A stretch of DNA of 64,000 nt from NCBI GenBank assembly GCA_965644295.1, contig CBFFRP010000291.1, positions 1-64,000 on the forward strand, in the 5' to 3' direction. Of this stretch, positions 19,414 to 49,095 are shown in pieces. Numbering within the stretch: the stretch's first letter is position 1; the number at the start of each line of letters is the position of its first letter. The DNA comes from Paraphysomonas bandaiensis (lineage: Eukaryota > Protista > Chrysophyceae). The notes below the pieces were generated by a model. That model worked only from the letters and a program-made list of their open reading frames with translations, had not been told where the DNA came from and did no database searches. Position numbers and translations under genes: made by a program.

Positions 19414-19770
19414 CGAGCGATGTCTAACAGAAGATATTTTGAAAGCTCAAGCAAAAGATGGAAAAAAGAAAGTGAATAATACGGTTGAACATGTTGGCTA
19501 ATACGTACATATGGGGTATTTTCAGTTTGAAGCTAAGGCCATAAAGCTGCGCAGTTGAAGAGAGGGATAAAAACAGAAGTTAACGGGAACCAAACAAAAG
19601 AAGCATGAGAAAATAAGCATTTTAAAGTTGCGGATTCGTTGTCGGGAAAAGAAGAGTAGTAGAGACTAGCTGAAAGCGGTATCAGGCAAGTTGGTGCAAA
19701 TGGCGTGCTTTGATCCACCCATTCTATATTGTAGGCTCTGCCACTATATTTGTAGCCAGCAGGTAACAAC

Positions 19771-20776
19771 TTTCTGCCCGCTCATAACCGAATATAAGCG
19801 TCACTTGTATTGACGTCTTTGGACCCTGACGAAGGAACAGACATCCGGGAATAGGCCCACCTGAAGGGTAACCGGGGTATTGGGCTGCCTGTTGAAGTTA
19901 AGCATCAGGGAACAACCCTGAAGTCAGCAGATGTCAGGTATATCAACATTCTGCTTGCTCACTGCATTCGTTTTGAGTGATCGATACTGAGTACTGGTTT
20001 ACATTATATTCGGCACCTGTGTGGCCATTGACCGAGGTAAAGCGTCAAGCTTTCCTCGTGGGTGCATGATGGCAATAATGGCAATATGTGATTAGACCTG
20101 TTATGTCCACAAGTCTACTGCCAAGTCTTGGATTCTCATGACCCAAGTCATTGAGATTATAACAAGGCTCTGGCACTGTTCTCCAAGCACATTTGTGGTG
20201 CTTTTATGCTATTCTTGCTTAGTAGGTTTCATCCGAGCGGTGAAGGCGCACTCTTTCCTACTTGCGTAAAAGTCACTCGGGAGAAGAGTGCAAGGGGAAT
20301 TCATGTGCTGGACGAGTGCACACACTATGGAGGGATGACTTTTTGGAGTCAGCTTGAATTTGTAGCAGATTTCGGTAGACGTCTGTTTCTTGCGTCAGTG
20401 TGTAAAACTGCACCAGTGAGACCGCTTCGTGACCGTGGGAGAACCCGACGCTAGAGCTCCTCTACTCTCCCCTCTAGTTTTTCAAGGACCCTAATGATCT
20501 GCCGCATATACAAGAGACATATATATGCCGAAGACACCAACCGTACGTTGTGTGTGTTAAGACAAGTTGATTGGGCAGGAGCTTATGATCCGGCTTAAAC
20601 ACGCAACGCGTTGTATGCCCATGTTGCGAACTAAATCGTGTTGTATAATTGAGCACTTGTCAGTGCATGCAATAGTAACTAGATAAGAGTCATGTTATGC
20701 TTAGTGTCGCGCGAGTTGTTCGGTCGGTTGCGGCAACGCACAAGCTTGCACTTCTTAATAATCAGGCATTCAGTAT
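19771..20776 (+). mobile_element. Same retroposon family, long form, 5'-truncated
   Basis: Collinear with the reverse complement of 55674-56775 over ~1 kb; ends taataatcaggcattcagta. Confidence 0.85.
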
Positions 20777-21447: not shown

Positions 21448-21961
21448 CCCTCAACAAAGAGTCGGACTCGCACCTTTTCGTGGTGTTCTGGGGGATAAGT
21501 ACCGCAGAGATTCTCTCTGGAAAACTAACGTGAGCCGCAAACATAGTCAGCAGATATTCTTCTGCCCACTCATAGCCGAATGCTTGTGTGGTACAAGGAC
21601 ACCAATAAGTGTCACTTGTGTAGACGTCTTTGGGCCCTGACGAATAAACAGACATCCGGGAATGGGCCTACCTCAAGGGCATCCGGGACAGGGCCCACCT
21701 GAAGGGTAACCGGGGTATTGGGCTGCCTGCTGAAGTCAAGCATCCGGAGTGTTCACCTTAAGAACTCAGAGCGGAAGTGGTCGTACCATGGTGCTTGCGG
21801 CGACGCACAAGCAGCTTCCGTAGCGTTAAATAGTAGGATAAAAAAAAGTGTGGACTGATTAGTTACAGGTAGAGGTCTAACTACTAAGACATTCATCCAG
21901 CTACTAAGTTGGTGTAGGTTTTTAACGCCTATTGCTAATAGTAGGACTTTCAATATATATC
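21448..21961 (+). mobile_element. Same retroposon family, short form, with 9-bp TSD
   Basis: Starts CCCTCAACAAAG; atttttcca at 21439-21447 and 21962-21970. Confidence 0.85.
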
Positions 21962-22982
21962 ATTTTTCCAGATCTTCTGTGTACTTGTTTCGGACAACTT
22001 TTGGAGCGTTCTTGTCAGCGGGTCTCAGCGGACGTTCCTCCAGGCCCAGGTGATTTTGATATTTTCGCACCGAGCGTACCTGCAATCTCTTTGTCCAGTT
22101 TACCACGAAAATTGATCGATCATCGGAAGCTCTTTCCAGTCCGAGTTGGAACTACCATCCGCTATCATGTCAAGATTTGACTTTTTACGGATGTTCTAAT
22201 CTACATACACTGAACGTGATATATACACTCAAACTCATGCCTCAACTATAAATTACAATCAATATTTCTTATCATTCTTTGTCATTCGCCTGAGCCTGGT
22301 AACCGTTAATGGTAATGCATTACAATTGCCGGGAACTGGACTACAACTAATGGGCCATTAATGGTTACAAGGCCCTGATCAACTATCAATCATTTTCATA
22401 CGATCTTAGATAGTCACAATCTTATACGGTCAATATAATCAGTTTCACTGCTATGATTGCTATCATGAAAAAGTTGTCATATTACAGTTTTAACCACTTT
22501 AGTATTCTTCGAGTAACGGTCATAATTCAATTAACTTTGAACTACAGCTTGTAATAGCTTACACATGCATGTATAAGAGTAAGAATTATATCCTTGGCTA
22601 CATTCCGGTACCGAAGTCTTGCGTAGAGGTAAAGCAGATACAAGATACATACTAGAATACTGAAGAATCCCGCAGGATTGTCTTGTTTTATAGTGTATAT
22701 GAAACTAGAATAAGTAGAGGCAATGAACAGGCTATATACATAATATAAAATATATTTAAAATATAATTCATATAAACCTTTGTCAATTGATACACAAAAT
22801 AAACAGAGTCGTAATGCGTAATGCACGCTAACGGGACAAAGCAGGATATTAATGTAACTTGTCGACATGAAATATAAAATATATCTACGTCAGAAAAAAA
22901 TGGAAGACAAGTTCGACGAAGGTTTCAAGAAATGCTTGCCCTATTAATAAAGCCGATAGTACCTATTTTTCTTGTCATCATT

Positions 22983-25900
22983 CTATTTCGCCTTGTCATT
23001 ACGCTTGCGATTGCTTAGTCGACCTTGTAATCGTAGTTTTGCAACATCGTGACGGGTAGCCATAGACATGCGATGGCGCGTTGTATTGACAGTTAACTTC
23101 TTCACTAAATCTTTACTTGTCATACTTGCACCTCGTGTTTCAGTCGAAGAATATTTTTCTTCCGTGTCTGTCACTTTATCCTTTTTATTCTGAAGTCTCT
23201 GCTCCAGCCTACTCCGCGCATCACTCTCACGGAATTTCATTGATACATCCTTCCCCGCCAATCCCATCGCAAACTTCTTCTTGGCATCTAAAACACTCTC
23301 GGCTTCTTCATCAATACTCTTTTGTGACCTAACCACAACGACAGGCCGAAAGCTATCCCCAGTGAATATTCTTCTCGGGGAGGGGGGAAGTATATTAACC
23401 TTCATATCGAAGTCATCACCATCATCTATATCCGAACTTAATCCAGCCGAACCATCTGATACCGCTTCGCTGTCCATTTCAATTGTATATTCCGAATTTA
23501 ATGTATTATCGGGAACGTTACTAAGTATACCGAGTGGTCTTTTAGCAGCAATACTCAAGTACTCATTTCCTGTATCTGTACAGGCAGATAAATTGCTCAC
23601 TTTAGTATCCTGCTCGGTAGCGCATTCTACCACAACATCAGATTGTTCGCTTCCAGGCTGTGAAATTTCAAATATTTGTGGCGCTATCATATTATCACGA
23701 GGTAAGCCAAAGCGTTTGCTCATTCTTGCTAATCGTGTCGCTTTGCGTAATTGGCGGCGTTCAGCCCCATGTGCTCCTGCACTACTACCTTCAACTTCCT
23801 CTCCACTAGAACTACTCAACTCGAACAACTTGTCCATCATACCATCTGCTTTCAGCTTTGCTGCCAACTTAGGAAGCTTTCTTGGTGTGGCTGCTCCATC
23901 TGACTGCTCAACCTCTTCGTCAGACAGGGCACCAAGAGTAACGTCATGCTCAATAACCATGCGCTTCATGTAGCTAACAACTTCATCCTCCGGTCGATGT
24001 ACATTGGGTAGAGATCGATCTCCGCTTCTACGCACAGCATTTGTTCCCGACTTTGGGGATTCGCTAGAGTCGTCGCCGTCGCTACTGGTGCTGCTTAAGT
24101 CATAAAGTTTCTCCAGCATACCATTCGTTCGTAATTTGGAGGCCAAATGTAAGCCCTGTCTATCACTCTCCGCCCTGTCAAGCTCATCATCAAACTCACC
24201 CAGGACTTCCCCAAGTTCCACCTCATTCTCTCGCACCATCCGCTTCATATACCCCACAACCTCACTCTCCGGCCGGCCTTTTTGCCTGCGCTGACGAAAG
24301 TTTCGAATGACCTTACGAGCTCCCATTGTAGCCGCCAGTGAAGGGCCTTGTATTGAGCTATCTCCCACTACAGACTTTTTGTCCATATGCCTTCCCAATC
24401 TCGTCATACGAGCAGCCCGATAAGTTCGTCTATGCTCGCGGTGTTGTTTCGCTTCTTCTCCATCGTCCTCTCCACTGCTGCTCAACTCAAAAAGTTTGTC
24501 CATCATTCCTTTCTTCTTTAACAAAGCAGCAAGCTTTGTCGATTCCTGGGTCTCGTCATTATCGAAGTCGTCAGAGGTAGCTCCGAAAAGAGCTTGGCCT
24601 TCCTGTACCATGTGGCCCATATACCCCACAATCTCTTCCTCCGGCCGATGCCGACGTTTAGTATCGGTGTCTTCCTCTGAAGAAAATCTTTCCAGAGAGT
24701 GAATTGACTGACTATCCAAATCACTGTTTTCTAGGGTGACTTTGTTGTCAGATGACAGAGTTCCCTCCTTGCGTTCATCCTTATCGTCATCACTGAGATC
24801 CAAGTCTCTCAACCTATCCATCATTCCTAATGACTGCAGTATCGCTCGTAACTTCGGTTGTTTCCTTCGTTCCTGAGCATCGTTGTCATACTCGTCGCCA
24901 GACAACTGTCCGAATCCGGTATCATGTTCTCCAACCATTTTCTGCATCGCGATCACAATGTCACGGGCCCTTTGCTCCTCAAAATTGAATTCATCGGTAT
25001 CCGCAGCGACTGGACTCATGTCCTTCTCAAGATCGCTGCAACTTCTCAAGAGCCTCCGCTTTCCATCAGGCAGTGCGAAGTCACCGTCAATAGACACAAA
25101 TGGGGGCCTGCAGCGAGATAGTCTTTGGTCCTGGTACCACTTACCCTCAATTTGTTCGGCTTGTAATCGATGCGCTCTGTCAATCGCTCTGTAGTTGTAA
25201 TACACGATTGGACCAAATATAGCAATAGCTATAAGCAGTGGTACTACAACATAACCAGGGTTCGTTTCAAACAGAACTACATGAAGCAACCCAATGTAAC
25301 CAAACAGGCTCCAGTTTACTAAACTGAAAAACATTTGTTCCATTGGTGCCGGTAGATTCATCAATAATCCGAACATAAATAGCAGTAATACCGACATACT
25401 ATTGATAAACGCTGTCACTCTCAGCTTTCCTCGGTAAGTATTGGCTGTGCTCTTGTCACGTCTGTACGTGCGTTTCGGAAGTGGTGTCCGAAATCCCATC
25501 ACAACACCACTTTCAAAGAGATGCGGAAAGCCTCGAGCAACACGAGTCGAAACAAAGAGGTAATCACAAGCATTGAACTGACCATCGTCATCTTTGCTCG
25601 GCTCCTTAGAATCCTGATTGACTAGTTTCGCTTTATAATTTTCAACAGCATAAACTACATTACGCTTGATGCGACTCACTTCTGAAAATATAAGAGAGGG
25701 TATAATCATCTGTGAGATTACCATACATGCTGTGCTGACAATAACAACCTCAAAAAATAACCACAGCAGGAATGACTGTAACCACGCATTCTGACGATTT
25801 TCGGATTGATTTAAGGCGAATAAAAATACATAAAAGAGAAGTGCCATGTTAAATAGGATAATAAACGCCCACCCCATGAACTTCACGTATGCACTGACAG

Positions 25901-28900
25901 TTTTAACCTGTCCACTTCCATTACCTATACCCTTTCTCTCAACTATTTTACCCTTGGCGCCAAGTAGCAAATCCTGCTGAAACAGGAAAAGAATACGGCG
26001 ACCTCGTGCTTCATCAGATAGCATTGACATAGTTTGGATCTCTTTGACCACAGTTTCTCTAACAGATCGAATATCTGATAGCAATGGGCCCATTACACTT
26101 TTATTAGCTGCCATGAGGCTTCTCATTCGGCCAGTTGTACTAACGGGAACATCATCCATTTGTAGCAACTCTTTGGCCATTGATACATCGATTCCCCAAG
26201 CCATATCGAATTCTCGAAGTTGTTTTGGAGATAAACTAGCCCTATATTTGTCAATTTTGCTAATCATATCTATCAGTTCGTCACGAGGACTAACACCCAA
26301 CCCACCCGCTATAGTAGCTCGCTTCGAGATTTTGTCTTCCGAATTCTTTACACCAACTTGATTGTTCCGAAATTTGTTGCTAAACATAGCCATCCGTTTT
26401 GGTGCTTGAACCCCCTGTGTCCCTTGATGACGGCTGACATCACTATTTATCGGCACTACAGCTGATTCGTTCGAATTCTCCGTTGGCTTTGCCAGTATTT
26501 CAATTATGACGATCTCCAGAACAACGACTAGAGGAAGGCTCAACATAGCACACACAACAGCAACTATAAATATGGCTTGAGTACTGTCACTTGGTTCACG
26601 GAAATGGCAAGTTGAAGCCTCCGAATCAAAGTAGCACTTACTTTCGTGAGACGAAAAAGGTGACCGCTCTTCCAAGCACTCATTCTTGTTATCAATGCCT
26701 TTACAAGACCCATCATCAGGGTTCACAAGATTGTACAGCAACGCATTAAAAAACATGGTGGATATTACAGCACATACAAGAGAGAGAGCCCTCAGTACAC
26801 GAGGAAACTCCGGTGTGTAGTGGTACACCAAGCTGACCCAACGGTGGGACTGTTTCAGTTCTCGGATAAACACAGACACGAATGGCTCATTACGGAAAAT
26901 AGCAGGAAATATGGACTCTACAATTTCAACCTTGTCCTTTGCAGCTGGAGCGTTTAGTGGTCGCGCTGCACGGCCGTGAATATTCTGAGCTGCATTTTTC
27001 TTTATTTCCTCTTTCTTACTTACTTCATCATCTGCTTTATCACTGTAAAAAACCCCACAACACCCAAAGCATGCTATAAAACCCAGAGTCACGACCACTT
27101 TCCAACTACGAGTCACATCGCCCACAGTCAAATCACCTGCCGACCGCCACGTGGTCACAAAATCGTCCAGCACAAATTCTGTCATCGCAACGAATTGTGC
27201 GTTCACATACTCGGATCCACCAGAGGATGGCGGTGAACCAGAATTTGCAGCACCAGAAGGACAGATACAATTGACAGAAGTCAGAGACGACGATGCTATG
27301 TCCACTTCACAACTGCTGTCGACTACATCAACACCCACTACTCTGTTACATACAGGAACTAAGGTAGTCTTTGGGCAATGTATTTCAAATATTCCAGTGA
27401 CATTTTCGCAAACAAAAGTGTAATTTGATCCGTCCGGGCAATGATACACCTCACTCGTCTGAAATTTATCCTTCGTACAGACCGCCTCAATGATGGATTC
27501 GTTAAAGACAACTCCATAATCAACTGGCACTATGTTTTGAAGGGAAATATTCAATATTGACGAACTGTTTGTTCTATTCGTCTCCGAACTTGCACTTATA
27601 ATTGACAAGGGGTTGGCTGACAAACCTGGCGTTAAAGTGTCATACATTGCAGCATCAAACGATACCAAACAGTAGCCGCTTGTACTTGGTGCGATTGACG
27701 ACACATAAGAAGTTTCTTTTGATGCCAACAACTCTGCCGATGTTTGGGGTATTGAAAGCGTAAAATTATCAGATGAGTCCACTAATATTGCAGATATCCT
27801 TATCTTAGACTTCAGGGACTGGAACGTATACTCTCCCAATATCATGTCGCTTGAAATAACACCACAGAACTTTTCAAGCATATTAGACAACGATGTAATT
27901 ATGCCCGTTTTGTATTCTGTAGTTAGTACAGGGAAGTCATAAAAGTCTTGAAATCGGCTCACAGCATCAATGGCATTCAGTACTGCTTCAAGACCTTCCA
28001 CTGAAATGTCAACGTCAGATGCCGAGTCTAATATCACATGTATGGCTGACACTGCACAGTCTGCACCTCTCGAGCTCAGCTTAGTTGGGTCTATAGAAAG
28101 CGTACGCAATACTGCAATCCAGGACTGAATAGCTGATAGAGTGGCATCCTGCAATTGAGACAAGGTCTGCAATGCACACAGTATTGTTTCCTGGAGGCCA
28201 GTTTTATAAGCCATTTCTACTTCATCAATGGAGCAATCTGCACCGTAGTACCCCGGATCGCACACACATATTGCACTGCATGATGGCTCAGACAGAAGAC
28301 AAGAGTCTACCTCAAGACCTAGAGCCGTAACAACATATTGACATGTGCCCTTGTCCGAACACGAATTCACACACTGCTTCGAAACTGGGACACATATCTC
28401 CTGTTGACATTCCATAAATGGAAGACATGATTCATCCGTTGAACAAATATCTCCTTCGTGAACATCCTGATCAACCACACACATGCTGTTGTGATGACCG
28501 TACACTCCAATAAACTCATCTGATACACATGGTCCACAAGTGTGGGCTGTGGTTGAACAGGCCTGCCGATTCAATTGAGTACAATTCGGGGCACTAGCGC
28601 ATACCACAGCACTGGACACAGATGCATAGACTGATATTGCATTCTCTAGAGCATCCACATCATCCAGCATAATCAGCGTCTCAAATGTCTTCGTAACGTT
28701 GTCGACAGATACGGGCTCCATAGAGGGGTTAACAGTTACACTATACTCTCCTGTGCTATATGAGTCAAGCGAATCATAGGTCTGTAAACTGCATTTTAAT
28801 TCGTTATCCTTCGTGTCGGAGCCTCTTGGTAATATTGTTGTGGCGGACGCCTCTTCAGATTTGGAACCTACGACATGAATAGTGTTCTCAGGTGTCAAAT

Positions 28901-31900
28901 ATCCAAAGCGATATGTCAATGGGAGGTCAACATCGCTCCATAATGAGGCCGTAAACACAAAGTTATCCTTCAACTCTGTGCCAACCGAAGGGGAAACAGA
29001 AAAGGAGCCAGGCCTAGGAGGAGAATTGGTCAAAACACGAATAGATGAAGACGTTGTGTCTCCAGATCCATAAGTAAACGATAGTTTAAATATATACACA
29101 ATATTTCCAGAGAGACTGTTTGCTGAAATAGCCAGGTTTGAGGGAAAATTCACTGCTTCATTTGGAATGCTATAACGTGTAGGGGATGTCGTCGAAACTT
29201 TTAATGTATTAATACTTTCGTCATTTACCAGCCATTGTGCCAGTCCAGAGAAAGTACTAGTTATAGATGCCAAAACCTTCAGCTTAGTCGCAGGATTCAC
29301 TACACCCACGATGGGACTAACAGACACTATGGGAACTCCTGAACTAACTGTGGTTATCTTTATGGTTGTTTCATCAGACCGTAACCCACTGCTATCTGTG
29401 ACTGTCAGAGTTATGTAAAACAGTGTATTGATAGCTGTGATGAACGGTGGCCTAACTGACGCCAAGGCAGCATTTACTGATGATGGGTCGCTGTAATTGA
29501 ACACAGAGCTGCCACAAGGTACAAACACCGACCCAGGTGCGAGCGACACACAGCTCCAGTGGTAATGAATACTGCCAGATTCATCCAGCACATCGGGATC
29601 TTGACTTTCAGATGCATTCAGCACTAAGCTCTTCCCGATTTCCACAGCTCCTTCCAAGCCGCCAGAAAGAACAGCATTCAATGTAGATGGAAGAACTTCA
29701 ACTAGAATAGATTTCCTTCCTGCTTCCACGCCTAACGAATTCCTTATCACCACAGTAATTTCAACGCTCATCCCAACAGCAAGGGAATACGCTGGTAACA
29801 AAAACTTATTCGGTGACTTGGATGTGGAAACCATATTCGGCATCACCTCTCGCGATTTAGTATTCAAAACTGTCCATTCATACGTGGGCTTATAAAGAGT
29901 CAAAAATTCTGCAGACGTCTTATACAAGCAGGCATCATAAAACACTGACGCATAAACACTCAGAGTTTGATACCGACGCATAGTTCGTGACCTCGGACCC
30001 ACAATGCTGACGGACGGTGGGGCCGATCGCGCCACTTCGATTCGGTGTGTATCCGAGCCACATCTGCCCAGAAAGTTGCACAATGTGATCTCTATAGTGT
30101 ACACATTACTAGCTTTCAACAGTCCTATAGGTATAGCAGACGGTGGGTTCATGATGTATGAGGAGTTGAAAAAGAAGTTGATAGCATCAACATCAGCTGT
30201 CGTGCTACGTGCAGTGATACTGACTGTGGACCACGCACGCCCACCTGCACCAGTGGAAGACGTAAGATCAAGTGTGAACAGTGAACAATTACTGATTTTG
30301 GAAGGAGCAGTGACAACTACTTTAGGATAACCAGTAACAGCAGAAGTCACTGGTGTTGAACTGGGTGGTGAATGCTCCAGTGATGAGCAAATTGTGGTAT
30401 CGGCGTAAATGCATCTCCCTGTAATCACATTCGGCTGAATAGACACAATGTCACCAACGGTCAATGTGCTCAATGGACCGAGGGATATAGAAAGGCGGTA
30501 AGAGTTTTCCCAACTACAAGACGCCGATGACGCATGACTGAAGCTTAGAACTTGGTCGCAGGAAAAAGAAGTATCAATAAGGTCGCCTTTATTAGTCGGC
30601 GATGTAAACTTGACCAACAACAGTGATCCATCAGACACGAATCGCGCGTAACTGATAATGGGTGCAGGAGGGAGGTGGTATACGGGTAGCACATGAACAT
30701 TCTTACCGGACGGAAACGTGACCGCATATTCTTCACCAGATGATCCACTCAAAGTAATATTGAATTCATAGTTACCTTCCACATCAGCTACAAACATAAT
30801 AGTCTTTTCGAGCTCCGACAAACTCGAATTGGCTGTGTACTTTATTTCACTCGGAGTCAAAGCACTAGATGCGTTGAATGTTTGTAACCGACGATCATCG
30901 GAAGTATTGGTAAAGTTGGAGCCCATGTAAAAAGCGGACACAGTAACAGTCACATCTTGTGACGGAGGTGATTGTAATGATATAGTCATCACATCCGTCA
31001 CTTCACCAGCACCCGGCATGTAATCACTAACTACATCAGCTTCCAACCGGCGACAACATGGCATATTAACCCGTACTAAAGTGCTTCTAATATTAGCTTC
31101 GGACATCGCATCTCCATTGTAGGAAAATGTCGCGCAATATACGTGAACCTGGGCACCAGGAGGTACACCGTTGATACTTACGCTCGCCATACCGGATTGT
31201 GTGTGGGAAATAAAGCCATTCTGTCTAATAGACCACTGCGAGATGTACTCCGTCGACGATAATGCAGCACAATATACAATCCCATCCTCAGATAGCGTAA
31301 CATCTACCTTTAAAGAGTCCTCAGATGATATCGTGACATCCATTGTTAATATATTGGGGGCCAAGTCCCAATATATCTCTGCACTAGGATACTGACTAGG
31401 TGTGGCAGATGGTATCGAAGTAGGCAGCGTAGAGGGCACGCTGGATGGAATATATGACGGATAAGAAGAGGGTTCACATGAGGGAACGCTAGTGGGGAGT
31501 AATGTCGGATTGCCGCTCGGGGCATTGCTTGGACAGCCGCTAGGCTGTGAAGACGGGATCTCAGTTGGTGCTGTTGATGGTTGTGAAGTAGGCTTACTGG
31601 AAGGCTCACTGCTAGGTTCATATGATGGAGATGTTGAGGGAAATGATGTGGGTTCTCCAGATGGCAGACACGAAGGTATGCTGCTGGGCAGTCCAGTCGG
31701 TTGGGTGGAAGGGATAGTCGTCGGTAAAGCTGTGGGAAATGAGCTCGGTTTCGACGTAGGTTCATGCGATGGGCTTGCACTTGGAAAACTAGATGGTGAA
31801 CTCGACGGGACTCCCGTTGGGTACGATGTAGGTACACAAGATGGCTGACTGGTAGGTGAGTCCGAAGGCTGACCTGTGGGTATACTTGTTGGGTATGACG

Positions 31901-33980: not shown

Positions 33981-34804
33981 CTGATATATATAGACTGATA
34001 TATAACCACAACAGAGTAATAAGAGGAATAACGCCTATGCTATACACAGCTATGCACTCTCCTCGACGGACAATTCAGTACAAACTGTACCATAAGATGA
34101 TACAGTAACCACTCTGATCAGAATTAAACACAGGCAGTATTAGAGATATGTAATTACCAATAGTATATATATACCCTCATAGACGAGAGACCGACACCAT
34201 CTACTGTGTGTGTATCTGCATATCGTCATCTTTTGGTATACAAACTGTCGTACTTTAGTAGGAATTCCAATCCACACTCTACCATACCATACCATACCAT
34301 TCCACGGCATACGCACTCAGAGTACAGTACGAAGTACCCGTTAACTGGGTTACCACCCCGTCAAAGTTCAACAAAAAGAATTTTAGAAAGGGAAGAAAAA
34401 ACAATGTGTCATTTTCAGTCTAATGTGGTCTTACAGTTAGTACGAGTAGCGAAATATCATATATTTTCGGGTTTACATTCATAGAAAATTGTAGTTTTTA
34501 GACATCTGTCGTGGAAATTAATATAGTTTTTATGACAAGAATATTTTTTCATATGTAATTTACTGCAGTGGTTAGAGGCGATGGCTGATATATGGTATGT
34601 AACATATAGATGTGAGTCAGATCGATAAGTGTTGTCTTAAAGCTCTGAATGACACCTGTATTGATATTGTTATAGCCTATCGCGAAACTGAAACAATGCC
34701 CTTATGGTACTAACCCTTACAATAGCCTCCTATAGCTAACTAAGCCTATAAACTGTTCATACCTTTAGTTCTATATTATTATTGTATACTTTCGAGGATT
34801 CACT
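33981..34804. promoter_or_regulatory. Putative shared bidirectional promoter of the two receptor genes
   Basis: 824-bp spacer between divergent ATGs (33980 minus, 34805 plus), containing TACAG/ATACC-rich tracts like other 5' regions in the window. Confidence 0.55.
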
Positions 34805-37800
34805 ATGAAATATACAATAGCGATCTTATTTATTTTGTTGGGACAGTATAATATTTTAGTATTATCCCAGTCGTGTACGGAAAATACTGTGACGACGATA
34901 GCAGGGGACGGTAGCGACTCTTATGTCGATGGGGTGGGTACTAATGCCAGATTCAAGACATTGGCTGGTGCCAAAGTATCATCTGATGGGAGTTTTGCTT
35001 TACTCTGTGACGAAAATGCGGATGTAGTCCGGCACGTCTCACTGGCGACATCGGTTGTGTCCACACTTGCTGGTGGGTCACATTCTGGTTATTTAGACGG
35101 GACTGGTACAAATGCCAGATTTGACACTCCATCTGCTTTAGCAATATCTAGTGACATGTCGTTCGCACTAATTGCTGATAGAACTACTAATAGGGTGCGC
35201 AAGATTATTATATCGACCAAATTGGTTAGTGTTCTAAGTGGAAGTGGGTCAGCCGGAGTCGTAGATGGAACTGGAACTGGTGCACAACATGACAGGCCTC
35301 AGGGGATCGCAATATCTAGCGATGATGTATTCGCACTTGTCGTGGGAGACAATGATGTGTTGCGACATATCGTTATTTCCACTGGAGTTGTTACAACAGT
35401 TGCAGGAACAACCGCGTCTGGGACTAGTAATGGTGTGTATTGTTCGATTGTTTATATGCTGCCAATGTTTAATGTGTGTTATTTGTAGGTGTGGGTACCA
35501 ATGCGCGCTTCAATGACCCCTATGGCGTCACCTTATCCCCCGACGACACGTACGCTCTTATTGCGGACACTGACAACCACCGTATTCGAAAGGTTGTTTT
35601 AACATCGAAGGTGGTGACTACAATAGCAGGTAGCAGTAGCGGAGATTTAGGGGGCGTTGGGACCAATGCTCGATTCCATCAACCACATGGCATTGCCATT
35701 GACCCCTCAGGAACCTACGCTTTGATAACGGACACCAACAACCATAAGATTAAAAAGATTATACTTACCTCTTCTGTGGTATCGACTTACGCAGGATCCG
35801 GCACGTCCACATATGCTGATGGTTCCTTGTTGTCAGCGAGTTTTGATGAACCGTGGGGGATCGGACTATCCAGTGGTGGCCTTTTTGCTTTAATCGCAGA
35901 TAGTAAAAACAGACGACTGAGGATGATTACCATAGCATGTCCATCGCCCACATCAACTCCGACGGCGTCCCCTACGTACGCTCCTTCATCGATTCCTACG
36001 AGTTTCCCGACCTTTACACCAACTGTGTCGCCCACTAGAATACCAACTTCCGCACCTACTACGGCTCCCACACTTTCGCCTACGGGATGCCCGACACATA
36101 CCCCCACGTCCATTCCAACCAGTGTTCCGACGGGTAAGCCTTCTACGTTCCCCACATCGGCACCATCTGGGCAACCCACATCGTGTCCGTCAAATGTGCC
36201 TACGGGTGAACCATCTGGGTTACCTACCTCGCCTCCATCCAATACCCCCACTGGTGAACCATCTGGGCAACCTACGTCATACCCAACCAGTGAACCTACT
36301 GGTGAACCATCTGGGCAACCTACGTCATACCCAACCAGTGTACCTACTGGTGAACCATCTGGGTTACCTACATCGCTTCCCTCCAATACACCTACTGGTG
36401 AACCATCTGGGCAACCTACTTTATCTCCGACAGGTGTACCTACTGGTGAACCATCTGGGTTACCTACATCGTATCCAAGTAGTACACCTACAGGTAAACC
36501 ATCTGGGCAACCTACATCGCTTCCCTCCAGTGTACCTACTGGTGAACCATCTGGGCAACCTACGTCATACCCAACCGGTGAACCTACTGGTGAACCATCT
36601 GGGTTACCTACATCGCTTCCGTCCAGTATACCTACTGGTGAACCATCTGGGCAACCTACGTCATACCCAACCAGTGAACCTACTGGTGAACCATCTGGGC
36701 AACCTACATCGCTTCCGTCCAGTATACCTACTGGTGAACCGTCTGGGCAACCTACGTCATACCCAACCGGTGTACCTACTGGTGAACCATCTGGGCAACC
36801 TACGTCATACCCAACCAGTGTACCTTCTGGTGAACCATCTGGGTTACCTACATCGCTTCCGTCCAGTGTACCTACTGGTGAACCGTCTGGGCAACCTACG
36901 TCATACCCAACCGGTGAACCTACTGGTGAACCATCTGGGCAACCCACGTCATACCCAACCGGTGTACCTACTAGTGAACCATCTGGGCAACCTACGTCAT
37001 ACCCAACCGGTGAACCTACTGGTGAACCATCTGGGCAACCTACGTCATACCCGTCCACTGTACCTACTGGTGAACCGTCTGGGCAACCTACGTCATACCC
37101 AACCGGTGAACCTACTGGTGAACCATCTGGATTACCTACATCGCTTCCGTCCAGTGTACCTACTGGTGAACCGTCTGGGCAACCTACGTCATACCCAACC
37201 GGTGAACCTACTGGTGAACCATCTGGATTACCTACATCGCTTCCGTCCAGTGTACCTACTGGTGAACCGTCTGGGCAACCTACGTCATACCCAACCAGTG
37301 TACCTACTGGTGAACCATCTGGGCAACCCACATCATACCCAACCAGTGTACCTTCTGGTGAACCATCTGGGCAGCCCACTACATGCCCAACCAGTGTTCC
37401 TACGAAGCAGCCATCTTCGCTACCTACTTCATTCCCAACTGCTGTACCCACATATCGGCCATCTGGGCTACCAACAGGAGATCCTTCTACGCAACCCACG
37501 TCATACCCAACAAGTATACCCACAGGTCAGCCTTCGGACTCACCTACCAGTCAGCCATCTTGTGTACCTACATCGTACCCAACGGGAGTCCCGTCGAGTT
37601 CACCATCTAGTTTTCCAAGTGCAAGCCCATCGCATGAACCTACGTCGAAACCGAGCTCATTTCCCACAGCTTTACCGACGACTATCCCTTCCACCCAACC
37701 GACTGGACTGCCCAGCAGCATACCTTCGTGTCTGCCATCTGGAGAACCCACATCATTTCCCTCAACATCTCCATCATATGAACCTAGCAGTGAGCCTTCC

Positions 37801-40800
37801 AGTAAGCCTACTTCACAACCATCAACAGCACCAACTGAGATCCCGTCTTCACAGCCTAGCGGCTGTCCAAGCAATGCCCCGAGCGGCAATCCGACATTAC
37901 TCCCCACTAGCGTTCCCTCATGTGAACCCTCTTCTTATCCGTCATATATTCCATCCAGCGTGCCCTCTACGCTGCCTACTTCGATACCATCTGCCACACC
38001 TAGTCAGTATCCTAGTGCAGAGATATATTGGGACTTGGCCCCCAATATATTAACAATGGATGTCACGATATCATCTGAGGACTCTTTAAAGGTAGATGTT
38101 ACGCTATCTGAGGATGGGATTGTATATTGTGCTGCATTATCGTCGACGGAGTACATCTCGCAGTGGTCTATTAGACAGAATGGCTTTATTTCCCACTCAC
38201 AATCCGGTATGGCGAGCGTAAGTATCAACGGTGTACCTCCTGGTGCCCAGGTTCACGTATATTGCGCGACATTTTCCTACAATGGAGATGCGATGTCCGA
38301 AGCTAATATTAGAAGCACTTTAGTACGGGTTAATATGCCATGTTGTCGCCGGTTGGAAGCTGATGTAGTTAGTGATTACATGCCGGGTGCTGGTGAAGTG
38401 ACGGATGTGATGACTATATCATTACAATCACCTCCGTCACAAGATGTGACTGTTACTGTGTCCGCTTTTTACTTGGGCTCCAACTTTACCAATACTTCCG
38501 ATGATCGTCGATTACAAACATTCAACGCATCTAGTGCTTTGACTCCGAGTGAAATAAAGTACACAGCCAATTCGAGTTTGTCGGAGCTCGAAAAGACTAT
38601 TATGTTTGTAGCTGATGTGGAAGGTAACTATGAATTCAATATTACTTTGAGTGGATCATCTGGTGAAGAATATGCGGTCACGTTTCCGTCCGGTAAGAAT
38701 GTTCATGTGCTACCCGTATACCACCTCCCTCCTGCACCCATTATCAGTTACGCGCGATTCGTGTCTGATGGATCACTATTGTTGGTCAAGTTTACATCGC
38801 CGACTAATAAAGGCGACCTTATTGATACTTCTTTTTCCTGCGACCAAGTTCTAAGCTTCAGTCATGCGTCATCGGCGTCTTGTAGTTGGGAAAACTCTTA
38901 CCGCCTTTCTATATCCCTCGGTCCATTGAGCACATTGACCGTTGGTGACATTGTGTCTATTCAGCCGAATGTGATTACAGGGAGATGCATTTACGCCGAT
39001 ACCACAATTTGCTCATCACTGGAGCATTCACCACCCAGTTCAACACCAGTGACTTCTGCTGTTACTGGTTATCCTAAAGTAGTTGTCACTGCTCCTTCCA
39101 AAATCAGTAATTGTTCACTGTTCACACTTGATCTTACGTCTTCCACTGGTGCAGGTGGGCGTGCGTGGTCCACAGTCAGTATCACTGCACGTAGCACGAC
39201 AGCTGATGTTGATGCTATCAACTTCTTTTTCAACTCCTCATACATCATGAACCCACCGTCTGCTATACCTATAGGACTGTTGAAAGCTAGTAATGTGTAC
39301 ACTATAGAGATCACATTGTGCAACTTTCTGGGCAGATGTGGCTCGGATACACACCGAATCGAAGTGGCGCGATCGGCCCCACCGTCCGTCAGCATTGTGG
39401 GTCCGAGGTCACGAACTATGCGTCGGTATCAAACTCTGAGTGTTCATGCGTCAGTGTTTTATGATGCCTGCTTGTATAAGACGTCTGCAGAATTTTTGAC
39501 TCTTTATAAGCCCACGTATGAATGGACAGTTTTGAATACTAAATCGCGAGAGGTGATGCCGAATATGGTTTCCACATCCAAGTCACCGAATAAGTTTTTG
39601 TTACCAGCGTATTCCCTTGCTGTTGGGATGAGCGTTGAAATTACTGTGGTGATAAGGAATTCGTTAGGCGTGGAAGCAGGAAGGAAATCTATTCTAGTTG
39701 AAGTTCTTCCATCTACATTGAATGCTGTTCTCTCTGGCGGCTTGGAAGGAGCTGTGGAAATCGGGAAGAGCTTAGTGCTGAATGCATCTGAAAGTCAAGA
39801 TCCAGATGTGCTGGATGAATCTGAATCCAGCGGCAGAATTCATTACCACTGGAGCTGTGTGTCGCTCGTACCTGGGTCGGAGTTTGTACCTTGTGGCAGC
39901 TCTGTGTTCAATTACAGTGAGCCATCATCAGTAAATGCTGCCTTGGCGTCAGTTAGGCCACCGTTCATCACAGCTATCAATACACTGTTTTACATAACTC
40001 TGACAGTCACAGATAGCAGTGGGTTACGGTCTGATGAAACAACCATAAAGATAACCACAGTTAGTTCAGGAGTTCCCATAGTGTCTGTTAGTCCCATCGT
40101 GGGTGTAGTGAATCCTGCGACTAAGCTGAAGGTTTTGGCATCTATAACTAGTACTTTCTCTGGACTGGCACAATGGCTGGTAAATGACGAAAGTATTAAT
40201 ACATTAAAAGTTTCGACGACATCCCCTACACGTTATAGCATTCCAAATGAAGCAGTGAATTTTCCCTCAAACCTGGCTATTTCAGCAAACAGTCTCTCTG
40301 GAAATGTTGCATATATATTTAAACTGTCGTTTACTTATGGATCTGGAGACACAACGTCTTCAACTATACGTGTTTTGACCAATTCTCCTCCTAGGCCTGG
40401 CTCCTTTTCTGTTTCCCCTTCGGTTGGCACAGAGTTGAAGGATAACTTTGTGTTTACGGCCTCATTATGGAGTGATGTTGACCTCCCATTGACATATCGC
40501 TTTGGATATTTGACACCTGAGAACACTATTCATGTCGTAGGTTCCAAATCTGAGGAGGCCTCCGCCACAACAATATTACCAAGAGGCTCCGACACGAAGG
40601 ATAACGAATTAAAATGCAGTTTACAGACCTATGATTCGCTTGACTCATATAGCACAGGAGAGTATAGTGTAACTGTTAACCCCTCTATGGTGCCCATATC
40701 TGTCGACAACGTTTCGAATACATTTGAGACGCTGATTATGCTGGATGATGTGGATGCTCTAGAGAATGCAATATCAGTCTATGCATCTGTGTCCAGTGCT

Positions 40801-43800
40801 GTGGTATGCGCTAGTGCCCCGAATTGTACTCAATTGAATCGGCAGGCCTGCTCAACCACAGCCCACACTTGTGGACCATGTGTATCAGATGAGTTTATTG
40901 GAGTGTACGGTCATCACAACAGCATGTGTGTGGTTGATCAGGATGTTCACGAAGGAGATATTTGTTCAACGGATGAATCATGTCTTCCATTTATGGAATG
41001 TCAACAGGAGATATGTGTCCCAGTTTCGAAGCAGTGTGTGAATTCGTGTTCGGACAAGGGCACATGTAAATATGTTGTTACGGCTCTAGGACTTGAGGTA
41101 GACTCTTGTCTTCTGTCTGAGCCATCATGCAGTGCAATATGTGTGTGCGATCCGGGGTACTACGGTGCAGATTGCTCCATTGATGAAGTAGAAATGGCTT
41201 ATAAAACTGGCCTCCAGGAAACAATACTGTGTGCATTGCAGACCTTGTCTCAATTGCAGGATGCCACTCTATCAGCTATTCAGTCCTGGATTGCAGTATT
41301 GCGTACGCTTTCTATAGACCCAACTAAGCTGAGCTCGAGAGGTTCAGACTGTGCAGTGTCAGCCATACATGTGATATTAGACTCGGCATCTGACGTTGAC
41401 ATTTCAGTGGAAGGTCTTGAAGCAGTACTGAATGCCATTGATGCTGTGAGCCGATTTCAAGACTTTTATGACTTCCCTGTACTAACTACAGAATACAAAA
41501 CGGACATAATTACATCGTTGTCTAATATGCTTGAAAAGTTCTGTGGTGTTATTTCAAGCGACATGATATTGGGAGAGTATACGTTCCAGTCCCTGAAGTC
41601 TAAGATAAGGATATCTGCAATATTAGTGGACTCATCTGATAATTTTACGCTTTCAATACCCCAAACATCGGCAGAGTTGTTGGCATCAAAAGAAACTTCT
41701 TATGTGTCGTCAATCGCACCAAGTACAAGCGGCTACTGTTTGGTATCGTTTGATGCTGCAATGTATGACACTTTAACGCCAGGTTTGTCAGCCAACCCCT
41801 TGTCAATTATAAGTGCAAGTTCGGAGACGAGTAGAACAAACAGTTCGTCAATATTAAATATTTCCCTTCAAAACATAGTGCCAGTTGATTATGGAGTTGT
41901 CTTTAACGAGTCCGTCATTGAGGCGGTCTGCACGAAGGATAAATTTCAGACGAGTGAGGTGTATCATTGCCCGGACGGATCAAATTACACGTTTGTTTGT
42001 GAAAATGTCACTGGAATATTTGAAATACATTGCCCAAAGACTACCTTAGTTCCTGTATGTAACAGAGTAGTGGGTGTTGATGTAGTCGACAGCAGTTGTG
42101 TAGTGGACATAGCATCGTCGTCTCTGACTTCTGTCAATTGTATCTGTCCTTCTGGTGCTGCAAATTCTGGTTCACCGCCATCCTCTGGTGGATCCGAGTA
42201 TGTGAACGCACAATTCGTTGCGATGACAGAATTTGTGCTGGACGATTTTGTGACCACGTGGCGGTCGGCAGGTGATTTGACTGTGGGCGATGTGACTCGT
42301 AGTTGGAAAGTGGTCGTGACTCTGGGTTTTATAGCATGCTTTGGGTGTTGTGGGGTTTTTTACAGTGATAAAGCAGATGATGAAGTAAGTAAGAAAGAGG
42401 AAATAAAGAAAAATGCAGCTCAGAATATTCACGGCCGTGCAGCGCGGCCAAGTAACGCTCCACCTACAAAGGACAAGGTTGAGATCGTAGAGTCCATATT
42501 TCCTGCTATTTTCCGTAATGAGCCATTCGTGTCTGTGTTTATCCGAGAACTGAAACAGTCCCACCGTTGGGTCAGCTTGGTGTACCACTACACACCGGAG
42601 TTTCCTCGTGTACTGAGGGCTCTCTCTCTTGTATGTGCTGTAATATCCACCATGTTTTTTAATGCGTTGCTGTACAATCTTGTGAACCCTGATGATGGGT
42701 CTTGTAAAGGCATTGATAACAAGAATGAGTGCTTGGAAGAGCGGTCACCTTTTTCGTCTCACGAAAGTAAGTGCTACTTTGATTCGGAGGCTTCAACTTG
42801 CCATTTCCGTGAACCAAGTGACAGTACTCAAGCCATATTTATAGTTGCTGTTGTGTGTGCTATGTTGAGCCTTCCTCTAGTCGTTGTTCTGGAGATCGTC
42901 ATAATTGAAATACTGGCAAAGCCAACGGAGAATTCGAACGAATCAGCTGTAGTGCCGATAAATAGTGATGTCAGCCGTCATCAAGGGACACAGGGGGTTC
43001 AAGCACCAAAACGGATGGCTATGTTTAGCAACAAATTTCGGAACAATCAAGTTGGTGTAAAGAATTCGGAAGACAAAATCTCGAAGCGAGCTACTATAGC
43101 GGGTGGGTTGGGTGTTAGTCCTCGTGACGAACTGATAGATATGATTAGCAAAATTGACAAATATAGGGCTAGTTTATCTCCAAAACAACTTCGAGAATTC
43201 GATATGGCTTGGGGAATCGATGTATCAATGGCTAAAGAGTTGCTACAAATGGATGATGTTCCCGTGAGTACAACTGGCCGAATGAGAAGCCTCATGGCAG
43301 CTAATAAAAGTGTGATGGGTCCATTGCTATCAGATATTCGATCTGTTAGAGAAACTGTGGCCAAAGAGATTCAGACTATGTCAATGTTATCTGATGAAGC
43401 ACGAGGTCGCCGTATTCTTTTCCTGTTTCAGCAGGATTTGCTACTTGGCGCCAAGGGTAAAATAGTTGAGAGAAAGGGTATAGGTAATGGAAGTGGACAG
43501 GTTAAAACTGTCAGTGCATACGTGAAGTTCATGGGGTGGGCGTTTATTATCCTATTTAACATGGCACTTCTCTTTTATGTATTTTTATTCGCCTTAAATC
43601 AATCCGAAAATCGTCAGAATGCGTGGTTACAGTCATTCCTGCTGTGGTTATTTTTTGAGGTTGTTATTGTCAGCACAGCATGTATGGTAATCTCACAGAT
43701 GATTATACCCTCTCTTATATTTTCAGAAGTGAGTCGCATCAAGCGTAATGTAGTTTATGCTATTGAAAATTATAAAGCGAAACTAGTCAATCAGGATCCT

Positions 43801-46428
43801 AAGGAGCCGAGCAAAGATGACGATGGTCAGTTCAATGCTTGTGATTACCTCTTTGTTTCGACTCGTGTTGCTCGAGGCTTTCCGCATCTCTTTGAAAGTG
43901 GTGTTGTGATGGGATTTCGGACACCTCTTCCGAAACGCACGTACAGACGTGACAAGAGCACAGCCAATACTTACCGAGGAAAGCTGAGAGTGACAGCGTT
44001 TATCAATAGTATGTCGGTATTACTGCTATTTATGTTCGGATTATTGATGAATCTACCGGCACCAATGGAACAAATGTTTTTCAGTTTAGTAAACTGGAGC
44101 CTGTTTGGTTACATTGGGTTGCTTCATGTAGTTCTGTTTGAAACGAGCCCTGGTTATGTTGTAGTACCACTGCTTATAGCTATTGCTATATTTGGTCCAA
44201 TCGTGTATTACAACTACAGAGCGATTGACAGAGCGCATCGATTACAAGCCGAACAAATTGAGGGTAAGTGGTACCAGGACCGAAGACTATCTCGCTGCAG
44301 GCCCCCATTTGTAACTCTTTCTGAATGTGGTCCAGCTGGTGGTAATGGGAAGCTCTTACGAAGTGTGAGTGATGCTGAGAGAGAAATGAGTCCAGTCGCT
44401 GCGGATACCGATGAATTCAATTTTGAGGAGCAAAGGGCCCGTGACATTGTGATCGCGATGCAGAAAATGGTTGGAGAACATGATACCGGATTCGGACAGT
44501 TGTCTGGCGACGAGTATGACAACGATGCTCAGGAACGAAGAAAACAACCGAAGTTACGAGCGATACTGAAGTCATTAGGAATGATGGATAGGTTGAGAGA
44601 CTTGGATCTCAGTGATGACGATAAGGATGAACGCAAGGAGGGAACTCTGTCATCTGACAACAAAGTCACCCTAGAAAACAGTGATTTGGATAGTCAGTCA
44701 ATTCACTCTCTGGAAAGATTTTCTTCAGAGGAAGACATCGATATTAAACGCCGGCATCGGCCGGAGGAAGAGATTGTGGGGTATATGGGCCACATGGTAC
44801 AGGAAGGCCAAGCTCTTTTCGGAGCTACCTCTGACGACTTCGATAATGACGAGACCCAGGAATCGACAAAGCTTGCTGCTTTGTTAAAGAAGAAAGGAAT
44901 GATGGACAAACTTTTTGAGTTGAGCAGCAGTGGAGAGGATGATGGAGAAGAAGCGAAACAACACCGCGAGCATAGACGAACTTATCGGGCTGCTCGTATG
45001 ACGAGATTGGGAAGGCATATGGACAAAAAGTCTGTAGTGGGAGATAGCTCAATACAAGGCCCTTCACTGGCGGCTACAATGGGAGCTCGTAAGGTCATTC
45101 GAAACTTTCGTCAGCGCAGGCAAAAAGGCCGGCCGGAGAGTGAGGTTGTGGGGTATATGAAGCGGATGGTGCGAGAGAATGAGGTGGAACTTGGGGAAGT
45201 CCTGGGTGAGTTTACTGATAAGCTTGACAGGGCGGAGAGTGATAGACAGGGCTTACATTTGGCCTCCAAATTACGAACGAATGGTATGTTGGAGAAACTT
45301 TATGACTTAAGTAGCACCAGTAGTGACGGCAGCGACTCTAGCGAAGCCCCAGAGTTGGAAACAAATGCTGTGAGTAGAGGCGAAGATCGATCTCTACCCA
45401 ATGTACATCGACCGGAGGATGAAGATGTTAGCTACATGAAGCGCATGGTTATTGAGCATGACGTTACTCTTGGTGCCCTGTCTGGCGAAGAGGATGAGCA
45501 GTCAGGTGGAGCAGCCACACCAAGAAAGCTTCCTAAGTTGGCAGCAAAGCTGAAAGCAGATGGTATGATGGACAAGTTGTTCGAGTTGAGTAGTTCTAGT
45601 GGAGAGGAAGTTGAAGGTCGTAGTGCAGGAGCAAATAGGGCTGAACGCCGCCGATTACGTAAAGCGACACGATTGGCAAAGAATAATTCTAAATTTCCAT
45701 CTTCAAAAGATAAAGAGTCTTTGCTGAGAGAGTCAGCTGTATATTCTGCAAGTGGTAGTAAGGTCGGTATGATTCAAGCATTGGACCAGGCTCCAAGTTC
45801 TATCTCAGGTGATGATTCCGATGTTGCCATTACTATTAGGGAGCCAGATAACCACCAATGGGGTGGTCAACGGGTAGTTGGGGTAGATGGCGGCCCGCTT
45901 ATCATTAATACATTGGAGCGAATTGGAGAAGGTAGTGCTGAAGAAGGTTACGGCGAGTTCACCGGTATCCCAGATTCCAACAACACGATAGATGTTGACA
46001 GCGAAGCAACATCCGAAAGCAGCTCCCACAATTCAGAAATCAACAATGAAGTTACTTGTACGTCCGAGGTCAAGCCTAACAATAAGTTGCGTTCGCAGAA
46101 GAGTATTGATAGAGATGATGTTGTAGCCGCAAAGAAGAAGTTTGCCATGGGCTTGGCGGGGAAGGATGTATCAATGAAGTTCCGTGAGAGTGATGCGCGA
46201 AGTAGACTGGAACAGAGACTTCAGAATAAGAAGGGCAAAAATGCAAACACTGCAGAGAATTTATCGACTGAGACACGAGGTGCAAGTATGACAAGTAAAG
46301 ATTTAGTGAAGAAGTTAACCGTCAACACCACACGCCATCGCATGTCCATGACTACTCGACATGACGCTGCGAAATTGCGTTTACAGGATCGACTGAACGA
46401 TCGTAAGCGCGAAGTAAATATGAAATGA
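34805..46428 (+). CDS. Giant polycystin-1/REJ-like membrane receptor B: signal peptide, NHL-repeat beta-propeller head, PT/PS stalk, body as in receptor A (~3855 aa; one intron 35433-35488)
   Basis: NHL repeats (DGVGTNARF, FNDPYGVTLSPDDTYALIADTDNHRIRKV, FHQPHGIAIDPSGTYALITDTNNHKIKK). A 56-nt GT-AG intron joins the 227-aa and 3650-aa ORFs in frame. The rest is near-identical to receptor A. Confidence 0.85.
36200..37380 (+). repeat. Coding minisatellite, 48-bp (16-aa, PTGEPSGQPTSYPTSV-type) unit, roughly 24 copies, in the stalk of receptor B
   Basis: cctactggtgaaccatctgggcaacctacgtcatacccaacc recurs with 48-bp period. Confidence 0.92.
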
Positions 46429-48594: not shown

Positions 48595-49095
48595 CCCTCG
48601 CAAGTTTTCGAGGTATTCTGGAGAATAAGAAGCGGAAATATTCTCGGAGAAACTAAGGTGAGACCCATATGTAGTCAGCAGATAATTTCTGCCCACTCAT
48701 AGCCAAAAATGCTTGTGGTACAAGGGGCACTCACATAAGTGTCACTTGTGTAGTCGTCTTTGGGCCTAGACGAAAAAGCAGGCATCCGGAAATGGGACCA
48801 CCTCAAGGGCATCCGGGGTATTGGGGCGCGTGCTGAAGTCAAAAATCCGGGCTGTTCAACTGAAGGACTTAAAAGTCCTGAATTTAATAGATGTCAGATG
48901 TCAGGCATATCAGCATTCTGCTTGCTCACTGCGTTTACTTCGATTAATAGAGCGAAAGTGGTTGCATCTTGGTGCTTGCGGTGACGCACACGCAGTTTTC
49001 GTAGCGTTAAATTGTAGGATATCAGGGTGAAATGCTAGTTAGTTAAATATTAGTTCTAACTCGTACACGCCAATTGCTAATAATAAGCCATTCAC
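48595..49095 (+). mobile_element. Same retroposon family, degenerate intermediate form
   Basis: Shares the head (gtcagcagata...tctgcccactcatagcc...gtcacttgtgtag...ggcatccgg) and the short-type tail (gcttgcggtgacgcac...gtagcgttaaat...attgctaataataagccattcact). Confidence 0.8.

Follow-up and report, generated by a model that had tools for sequence, protein, structure and literature searches.

Two giant genes that lie head to head in a contig of the chrysophyte Paraphysomonas bandaiensis (NCBI GenBank assembly GCA_965644295.1, contig CBFFRP010000291.1, positions 1 to 64,000 of the forward strand) carry unrelated ligand-binding heads on nearly identical receptor bodies. This 64,000-nucleotide stretch is the window of the present analysis, and all positions are counted from its first letter. 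Gene A (minus strand) begins with a C-type lectin domain and gene B (plus strand) with an NHL beta-propeller, and the parts that they share form a large inverted repeat, which starts within their Pro/Thr-rich stalks and ends within their cytoplasmic tails. Overall, the evidence presented below makes it probable that A and B are an old palindromic pair of paralogs, the bodies of which have been homogenised by gene conversion, within a large family of polycystin-1-like receptors. Knowledge of receptors of the REJ/polycystin-1 type comes mainly from the kidney cilia and sperm of animals. In the present genome, that of a unicellular marine eukaryote, about 85 giant genes of this type were found, most of them without introns and with ligand-binding heads that are interchangeable. 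The parts of the two genes are as follows.

22983..33980, minus strand: gene A, one open frame in a single exon, 3665 amino acids (aa)
33468..33812, minus strand: head A, C-type lectin, aa 57-171 (Pfam Lectin_C, E 6.5e-13)
32622..33373, minus strand: A-specific stalk array, 120-nucleotide (nt), 40-aa unit x 6.3, 97% alike (Tandem Repeats Finder)
31960..32606, minus strand: distal stalk of A, 48-nt (16-aa) array of the same type as in B
28707..29894, minus strand: REJ domain of A, aa 1363-1758 (Pfam REJ PF02010, E 3.5e-42)
27246..28013, minus strand: predicted GAIN-like domain of A, about aa 1990-2245, helices followed by a beta sandwich (AlphaFold model)
25191..27104, minus strand: membrane region of A, aa 2293-2930, about 8 predicted transmembrane (TM) helices (hydrophobicity scan)
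23722..32540, minus strand: arm A of the inverted repeat, comprising distal stalk, REJ, GAIN-like domain, TM region and most of the tail
23002..23327, minus strand: 3' end of A, apparently unconverted, 82-84% DNA identity to B 46093-46409 (blastn)
33981..34804, no strand: spacer between the start codons, 824 nt, 36% G+C
34805..35432, plus strand: gene B exon 1, signal peptide and first four NHL blades, 209 codons
35433..35488, plus strand: gene B intron, 56 nt, GT..AG, predicted from sequence
35489..46428, plus strand: gene B exon 2, last two NHL blades, stalk, REJ, GAIN-like domain, TM region and tail
34874..35941, plus strand: head B, six-blade NHL beta-propeller (Pfam NHL, TEN_NHL), split by the intron
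36162..37439, plus strand: stalk of B, 48-nt unit x 26.6, 80% alike (Tandem Repeats Finder)
39505-40752, plus strand: REJ domain of B
about 41395-42162, plus strand: predicted GAIN-like domain of B
about 42304-44217, plus strand: TM region of B
36883..45684, plus strand: arm B, the partner of arm A (blastn and global alignment)

A repeat search of the window resolved the palindrome into three inverted pairs (25089-29576 / 39832-44319, 4488 nt, 99% alike; 29576-32324 / 37075-39823, 2749 nt, 99% alike; 23726-25069 / 44336-45679, 1344 nt, 97% alike), which are collinear and are joined by a single blastn alignment showing 97.7% identity over 8833 columns. The global alignment of the two arms contains 208 differing columns, that is 171 substitutions and 37 gap columns. 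The indels between the arms (24, 9 and 3 nt) are all in frame, one further gap column falling at the edge of the alignment, and the long frames of both genes are intact despite the 171 substituted positions. These differences are clustered, the longest identical run (746 nt) being matched in none of 2000 permutations. The unique centre between the arms extends from 32541 to 36882. A divergent pair of giant genes forming an inverted repeat with near-identical arms had been proposed in a preliminary description made from the sequence alone, and the repeat search and blastn both agree with it. The limits of the arms needed correction, however: their inner ends lie about 400 nt further into the stalk than previously placed, and the C-terminal tails at the 3' ends fall outside the near-identical region. 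The palindrome is not continued past either stop codon, where the DNA on the two sides is unrelated.

The earlier assignment of unrelated heads, a C-type lectin in A and an NHL propeller in B, was confirmed by Pfam. The product of gene A is arranged in the order signal peptide, C-type lectin, Pro/Thr stalk, REJ, GAIN-like domain, about eight TM helices and a long cytoplasmic tail, with Pfam matches to Lectin_C, PT repeats (E 1.4e-99) and REJ; an exact database look-up of protein A returned no record. A genome-wide scan with PF00059 puts the lectin domain at the same coordinates as the protein search. Reading of the translation shows the motifs of the sugar-binding site to be partly kept (QPN and WWD, as compared with the canonical EPN/QPD and WND). 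Because the lectin head retains QPN and WWD at these positions, its sequence makes a glycan a plausible ligand of A. For gene B, a start at 35476 had been assumed, which overlooked the first exon and the 56-nt intron; the true start is at 34805. Spliced gene B encodes 3855 aa with no stop, and the blade motif is restored across the exon junction. In agreement with the predicted intron, the junction is present in a 1578-nt contig of the sequencing run X8, in which 35431 is directly followed by 35488 and the 56 nt left out have GT..AG ends. Six repeats of a motif of the ...G-x-G-T-N-A-R-F... type were counted in the spliced translation of head B, and Pfam recognises NHL in it with E 2.3e-8 for the whole protein and 2.6e-13 for the head piece, along with PT and REJ (E 7.9e-43).

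The history of the pair is recorded in its silent sites. Over the body as a whole the synonymous divergence (dS) between A and B is 0.026. By region it amounts to 0.004 over aa 700-1400 of A and 0.024-0.032 over aa 1401-2890, rises to 0.16 in an island at aa 2891-2995, is saturated (1.47) over aa 3392-3565 and reaches 0.73 in the last 100 codons, where the ratio of nonsynonymous to synonymous divergence (dN/dS) is 0.13; over most of the body this ratio lies between 0.17 and 0.49. Between the arm and the 3' end, the stretch of A at about 23328-23721 can no longer be aligned with B. The steep rise of dS from the stalk side to the 3' end argues for a pair that was duplicated long ago and whose bodies were homogenised recently, rather than for a fresh graft of a head. 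We infer from these sequence data that A and B are old inverted paralogs, between which an internal 8.8 kb has been copied recently and probably repeatedly. The conversion would have worked from arm to arm, overwriting everything between the distal stalk and the proximal part of the cytoplasmic tail, with tracts ending inside the 48-nt Pro/Thr array on the inner side and in the tail on the outer side. The copying probably ran from B to A. This direction is hinted at by the stalks, since the 48-nt array is the sole array type of B but in A lies distal to an array of 120-nt units that only A possesses, and also by the body tree, as the nearest paralog by body (C513) is NHL-headed.

Searches of the genome give a similar picture of the two ends of the genes. 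The tails match only each other (78-79% at the aa level) and that of the paralog C394 (33-35%), the best other relative of head A is found in the same C394 (51%), and that of head B in C513 (49%); no near-identical donor of either head or of a tail was found in the genome. In the body tree, A and B fall into a clade with NHL-headed C513, headless C12 and lectin-headed C394 (99% support), and paralogous bodies outside the locus are only 25-36% identical to those of A and B. The preliminary description was thus right in that the histories of heads and bodies disagree: the two heads are each about 50% identical to a different paralog, while the bodies are 98-99% alike. Homology of the bodies, combined with heads that lack a common origin, implies a past exchange of either a head or a body. 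That exchange may have been the graft of a head or the overwriting of a body.

The change from shared to unique sequence lies inside the Pro/Thr stalk, as was originally noticed, and both the arm alignment and the repeat maps place it within the 48-nt array: the first 500 columns of the alignment are 85% identical, and a level of 99% is reached at A 32324 / B 37075 and kept from there onwards. The 120-nt array of A has no counterpart in B and is covered by no arm alignment. The same boundary was found at another place in the genome, in a cluster of four genes on one contig (C475a-d; about 66-133 kb; loci L017, L018, L021 and L023), the bodies of which show 98.2-98.6% DNA identity over 4.9-6.5 kb. 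The bodies of four related genes (C66a/b, C366 and C305; loci L015, L016, L020 and L022) are 91% identical to those of the cluster. In this set of eight genes, every alignment begins sharply at one shared position at the stalk base; on the upstream side of this position the stalks consist of unrelated repeat types, the N-terminal modules measure about 960-3650 aa, and one of the C475 genes has an NHL head 11 kb upstream. The C475 cluster can be regarded as an independent replicate of the A/B pair, the shared sequence starting in the stalk or at its base in both. On the other hand, the suggestion that the stalks serve as recombination joints across the genome is not supported, given that other paralogs have stalk DNA with no more than 64-70% identity to that of A and B; every paralog examined has a stalk repeat unit of its own. 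The stalk is better described as the place where homology, and hence the putative conversion, ends than as a shared recombination joint.

Independent sequence support for the locus was sought in Logan contigs from four short-read runs. Run X5 represents a different strain (10 substitutions, 5 gaps) and was produced in a separate study. One of its contigs, 2986 nt long, spans 33289-36279 and takes in the lectin and NHL heads, the spacer between them and the beginning of the B stalk. The depth of the body contig in this run is 154.7 versus 82.9 for the head contig (about 1.9x), and in run X1 it is 49.4 for the body versus about 30 for the heads (about 1.6x). A body at nearly twice the head depth fits two nearly identical bodies for each pair of heads. 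The window contains no N. The locus is also present in related strains or species. At the locus of the relative P0004, no inverted partner is seen. With respect to expression, which these runs indicate for both genes, an 851-nt contig of X8 over head A reaches 34138, RNA-type contigs for gene B start by 34643, and no depth is seen at 34228-34615 in either X8 or X12; both heads are covered by X12, a marine plankton metatranscriptome. An apparent joint of opposite strands in X12 is the double placement to be expected for a contig from the arms and not a rearrangement. Since transcript contigs enter the 824-nt spacer from both sides and its middle is without depth, it appears to be flanked by two 5' untranslated regions and probably serves both genes as a divergent promoter region. 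At spacer positions 34373, 34390 and 34495, a minority of X1 contigs lack a single base that the window has, which looks like homopolymer length variation or sequencing error.

The pair is not the only one of its kind in the genome. A PF02010 scan of the 62.6-Mb assembly gave 91 matches. These represent about 85 genes, which for the most part are frames of 2000-7800 aa that are not interrupted by stops. Heads were assigned to these genes by coordinates (upstream and on the same strand), and the 28-position Pfam NHL model proved insensitive on the genome (5 matches, with B missed), exon 1 of B being used as a query instead. By these means, at least 11 REJ genes were found to have an upstream lectin domain and at least 15 to have upstream NHL blades. 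The other REJ genes have other heads or none, as in C12, where a signal peptide is directly joined to the stalk. The head types are scattered on the body tree, requiring 5 changes where the minimum is 2. A profile of the GAIN-TM part retrieved 4922 cluster representatives (clusters at 50% identity) from public data, 1824 of them at E<=1e-30. Among 22 public representatives with long N-termini, PT repeats are present in 20, and the heads include NHL (6), LamG (3), FG-GAP (3), ALK/LTK glycine-rich (2), LRR (1) and C-type lectin (1), with further matches to pentraxin, CBM and ephrin-receptor-like modules. The modular plan of a variable head, a Pro/Thr stalk and a REJ-TM body, first deduced from the two genes, is thus seen both in the genome and in public data.

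The features of the locus could also be explained by a recent inverted duplication of B, or of its body, followed by the grafting of a lectin head and stalk through ectopic recombination between stalks, with the stalks acting as general joints for the shuffling of heads, as the preliminary description had it. This would account well for a junction inside the stalk and for a stalk of A that is a composite of two array types, and it is in keeping with the scatter of head types on the body tree, with the same boundary in the C475 cluster, with the diversity of heads in public data and with the head or body exchange that must have taken place at some past time. A recent duplication is nevertheless difficult to reconcile with the 3' ends, where a dS of 0.73 as against 0.026 in the body indicates that the pair is far older than the identity of its bodies. 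In addition, the genome offers nothing above 51% identity as a source of the lectin head or the 120-nt stalk, and an identity of 64-70% to other stalk DNA is too low for efficient homologous exchange. Overall, we consider such a graft rather unlikely. Purifying selection of extreme strength, acting on a pair that is old throughout and has undergone no conversion, would be consistent with a dN/dS below 1 over most of the body. However, selection on the protein does not remove silent differences, and the dS of the body is 28 times lower than that of the last 100 codons; moreover, paralogous bodies elsewhere in the genome are no more than 25-36% identical. This explanation is already contradicted by the silent-site data and is hardly credible.

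An assembly artefact, that is a mis-join in the stalk or folded haplotypes giving rise to a false second body, had to be considered as well, in particular since the contigs of all four runs break in the stalk with no read-level bridge, and since the organism may be diploid, for which 1-2% would be a plausible allelic distance. We regard it as very unlikely in view of the independent contig that holds both heads head to head, the elevated depth of the body in X5 and X1, and the 171 substitutions and three in-frame indels that separate the arms while both frames stay intact. Two haplotypes would, furthermore, show neither unrelated DNA past the stop codons nor diverged tails. The preferred reading, an old palindromic pair with bodies homogenised by conversion, has to be weighed against several points of its own. 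As the contigs of all four runs stop in the stalk, the link between each head and its body comes from the given assembly together with the twofold depth. The case for conversion is drawn from rate heterogeneity in two sequences with no close outgroup. As for the direction of copying, C513 is nearest to the bodies of A and B by path length, within a clade whose internal branching the tree leaves open, and the 26 aa differences between A and B, when polarised with the paralogs, are divided 8 versus 9 and show no asymmetry. The run X8 was classed by the tool as 'probably DNA', although the spliced contig and the empty intergenic stretch argue for RNA. Finally, the structure models on which the comparison with polycystin-1 is based are of middling confidence, with predicted local distance difference test scores (pLDDT) of 62-64.

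The shared body was analysed at the level of domains and fold. REJ is recognised in both ectodomains at E values far beyond the cut-off. For the 456 aa that precede it in A (aa 905-1360), the look-alikes in an atlas search are REJ clusters (score 0.97), and by sequence this segment looks like part of an extended REJ module. A model of A aa 1990-2960 was built with AlphaFold on 13 family sequences (pLDDT 62). In it, the beta sandwich of the GAIN-like domain contains eight invariant cysteines and a conserved CxC, and the best Foldseek matches of the model are the GAIN domains of latrophilin, GPR56, BAI3 and CD97, with a probability of about 1 but weak E values (0.03-0.1). In an exhaustive structural search with the same model, the best match was polycystin-1 (8z6b_A; Z 16.3, 237 residues), and GAIN domains came next with Z values of 8.3-10.7. 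With a second model that covers A aa 2280-2960 (pLDDT 63.5), polycystin-1 was an isolated top match (Z 10.0, root-mean-square deviation 3.2, 151 residues, PC1 3246-3610), the next one having a Z of 5.5. The match is confined to the N-terminal TM bundle of polycystin-1, and a profile search among the sequences of solved structures found nothing.

Other hallmarks of polycystins were not detected in the body. PLAT gave no match at E<=1 in A by Pfam, the loop after TM1 being only about 85 aa long, and its one weak match in the whole genome is not in any REJ gene. GPS had no Pfam match in A and none (0) in a scan of the whole genome, and no HL/T cleavage motif is visible in the translation of A. 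PKD_channel was not found by Pfam in A; about 15 separate PKD_channel genes exist elsewhere in the genome. Pfam detected no 7tm family, and the best G-protein-coupled receptor (GPCR) in the structural search had a Z of 5.5, providing no indication of a secretin-like 7TM part. The previously suggested polycystin-type body is retained with respect to REJ and the predicted fold. The GPS motif suggested with it is not detectable by Pfam, and PLAT and the channel half of polycystin-1 are absent. According to the models, the only clear structural match of the bodies is polycystin-1. The body is related to, and probably works like, the N-terminal two thirds of that protein, with a putative role in signalling. 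The cytoplasmic tails (22986-25190, minus strand; about 44218-46425, plus strand) contain four to five copies of an acidic/basic repeat of about 95 aa with a motif of the ...RPE-E-V-YM..MV.E......KLAA.LK..GMMDKL.ELSSS type, for which Pfam has no match.

Compared with known systems, the genes have most in common with PKD1, PKDREJ and the sea urchin suREJ proteins, which likewise combine a ligand-binding ectodomain (with a C-type lectin in PKD1 and suREJ), REJ, a GAIN-type domain (predicted by fold in A and B) and a multi-pass membrane part, and the membrane fold of A best matches TM2-5 of polycystin-1. In contrast to these proteins, A and B have no PLAT, no Pfam GPS, no HL/T site and no PKD_channel-like half, and about 8 instead of 11 TM helices, whereas their family is distinguished by a long mucin-like Pro/Thr stalk, by NHL and other heads, by a repeat-rich tail and by about 85 paralogs in one unicellular genome. 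An ectodomain with REJ and a multi-pass membrane part are described as features of suREJ and PKD proteins, and the sea urchin REJ proteins act in gamete recognition, for which those of the brown alga Ectocarpus are candidates (PMC4700764). The Ectocarpus gene Esi0130_0068, a male-gamete candidate recognition gene, encodes a large extracellular N-terminus and 6-7 TM helices and has been proposed as a recognition receptor under positive selection (PMC4700764). Its product resembles A and B as a multi-pass stramenopile REJ protein with a large N-terminus. It is, however, far smaller (1427 aa), GPS and channel matches have been reported for it, and neither a modular series of heads and stalks nor a palindromic pair has been described. 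A literature search on REJ expansions in algae or protists returned nothing relevant beyond the Ectocarpus paper and no description of the present family. A modular adhesive ectodomain, often with a mucin-like stalk, and a juxtamembrane GAIN domain, in A and B a predicted GAIN-like fold, are shared with adhesion GPCRs, from which A and B differ in having a membrane part that matches polycystin-1 rather than GPCRs and no secretin-type 7TM.

With regard to genome structure, the nearest parallel is provided by the palindromes of sex chromosomes, the inverted arms of which are more than 97% identical, surround a unique spacer and are kept alike by intrachromosomal conversion (PMC3403216). The arms described here are similar in being 97.7-99% identical with clustered differences. 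On the other hand, each arm is here an internal part of one gene, and the spacer holds the two putative promoters and two non-homologous 5' coding modules.

In functional terms, the heads of A and B would bind different ligands, probably a glycan in the case of A, and would act through one common transduction body, which would make the two proteins a pair of surface sensors with different ligands and one output. Lectin- and propeller-headed members are thereby suggested to report to the same downstream machinery, and are attractive as early candidates for functional studies of how plankton cells sense at their surface. The recognition of prey, mates or pathogens, put forward in the preliminary description, is a putative role, for which the literature on gamete recognition by REJ proteins offers the only functional lead. 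The palindromic pair would be a clean natural case in which conversion unifies the signalling part while the sensor parts stay unrelated, a homogenised body with unrelated heads being the reverse of the situation in animal paired immune receptors, and it offers a handle on how modular receptor families may keep a common output while their inputs diversify. A further step would be to see in the whole family a germline system of receptor diversification, in which gene-specific stalk arrays insulate the heads, conversion keeps the bodies uniform inside each cluster, and entire cassettes of head and stalk are now and then transferred from one body to another through breaks in the stalk. We consider this extension quite improbable; if true, about 85 sensors, mounted on a small number of standard polycystin-like transducers, would form a combinatorial repertoire in a single-celled marine protist.

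Several other arrangements of REJ genes were observed in the genome. Further head-to-head pairs of REJ matches are located at C380:259881-260984(-) / 273291-274391(+), C116:5492(-) / 15193(+), C328:30107(-) / 44334(+) and C169:33491(-) / 48826(+). In the C380 pair, both genes are NHL-headed and their REJ scores hardly differ, and the pair may be a palindrome with like heads. Two tandem REJ matches with equal scores (C506:8790-9980 and 22863-24053, plus strand) lie in identical open frames of 6091 aa, suggesting either that a giant gene was duplicated in tandem very recently or that the duplication arose in the assembly. A PKD_channel match at C66:166225-166911 (minus strand) falls within an open frame of 7778 aa, and the corresponding gene may be a fuller polycystin-1-like gene that retains the channel half.

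The remaining genes of the window are ordinary nuclear housekeeping genes, among them those for RNA polymerase Rpb2, a Myb protein, adaptin and kinesin. Outside the palindrome, 1-4 kb past the 3' ends of both genes, copies of a dispersed repeat (about 250-500 nt, 70-86% alike) occur in mixed orientations at 19133-19968, 21467-21840 and 48597-49092; the repeat may be a small mobile element.

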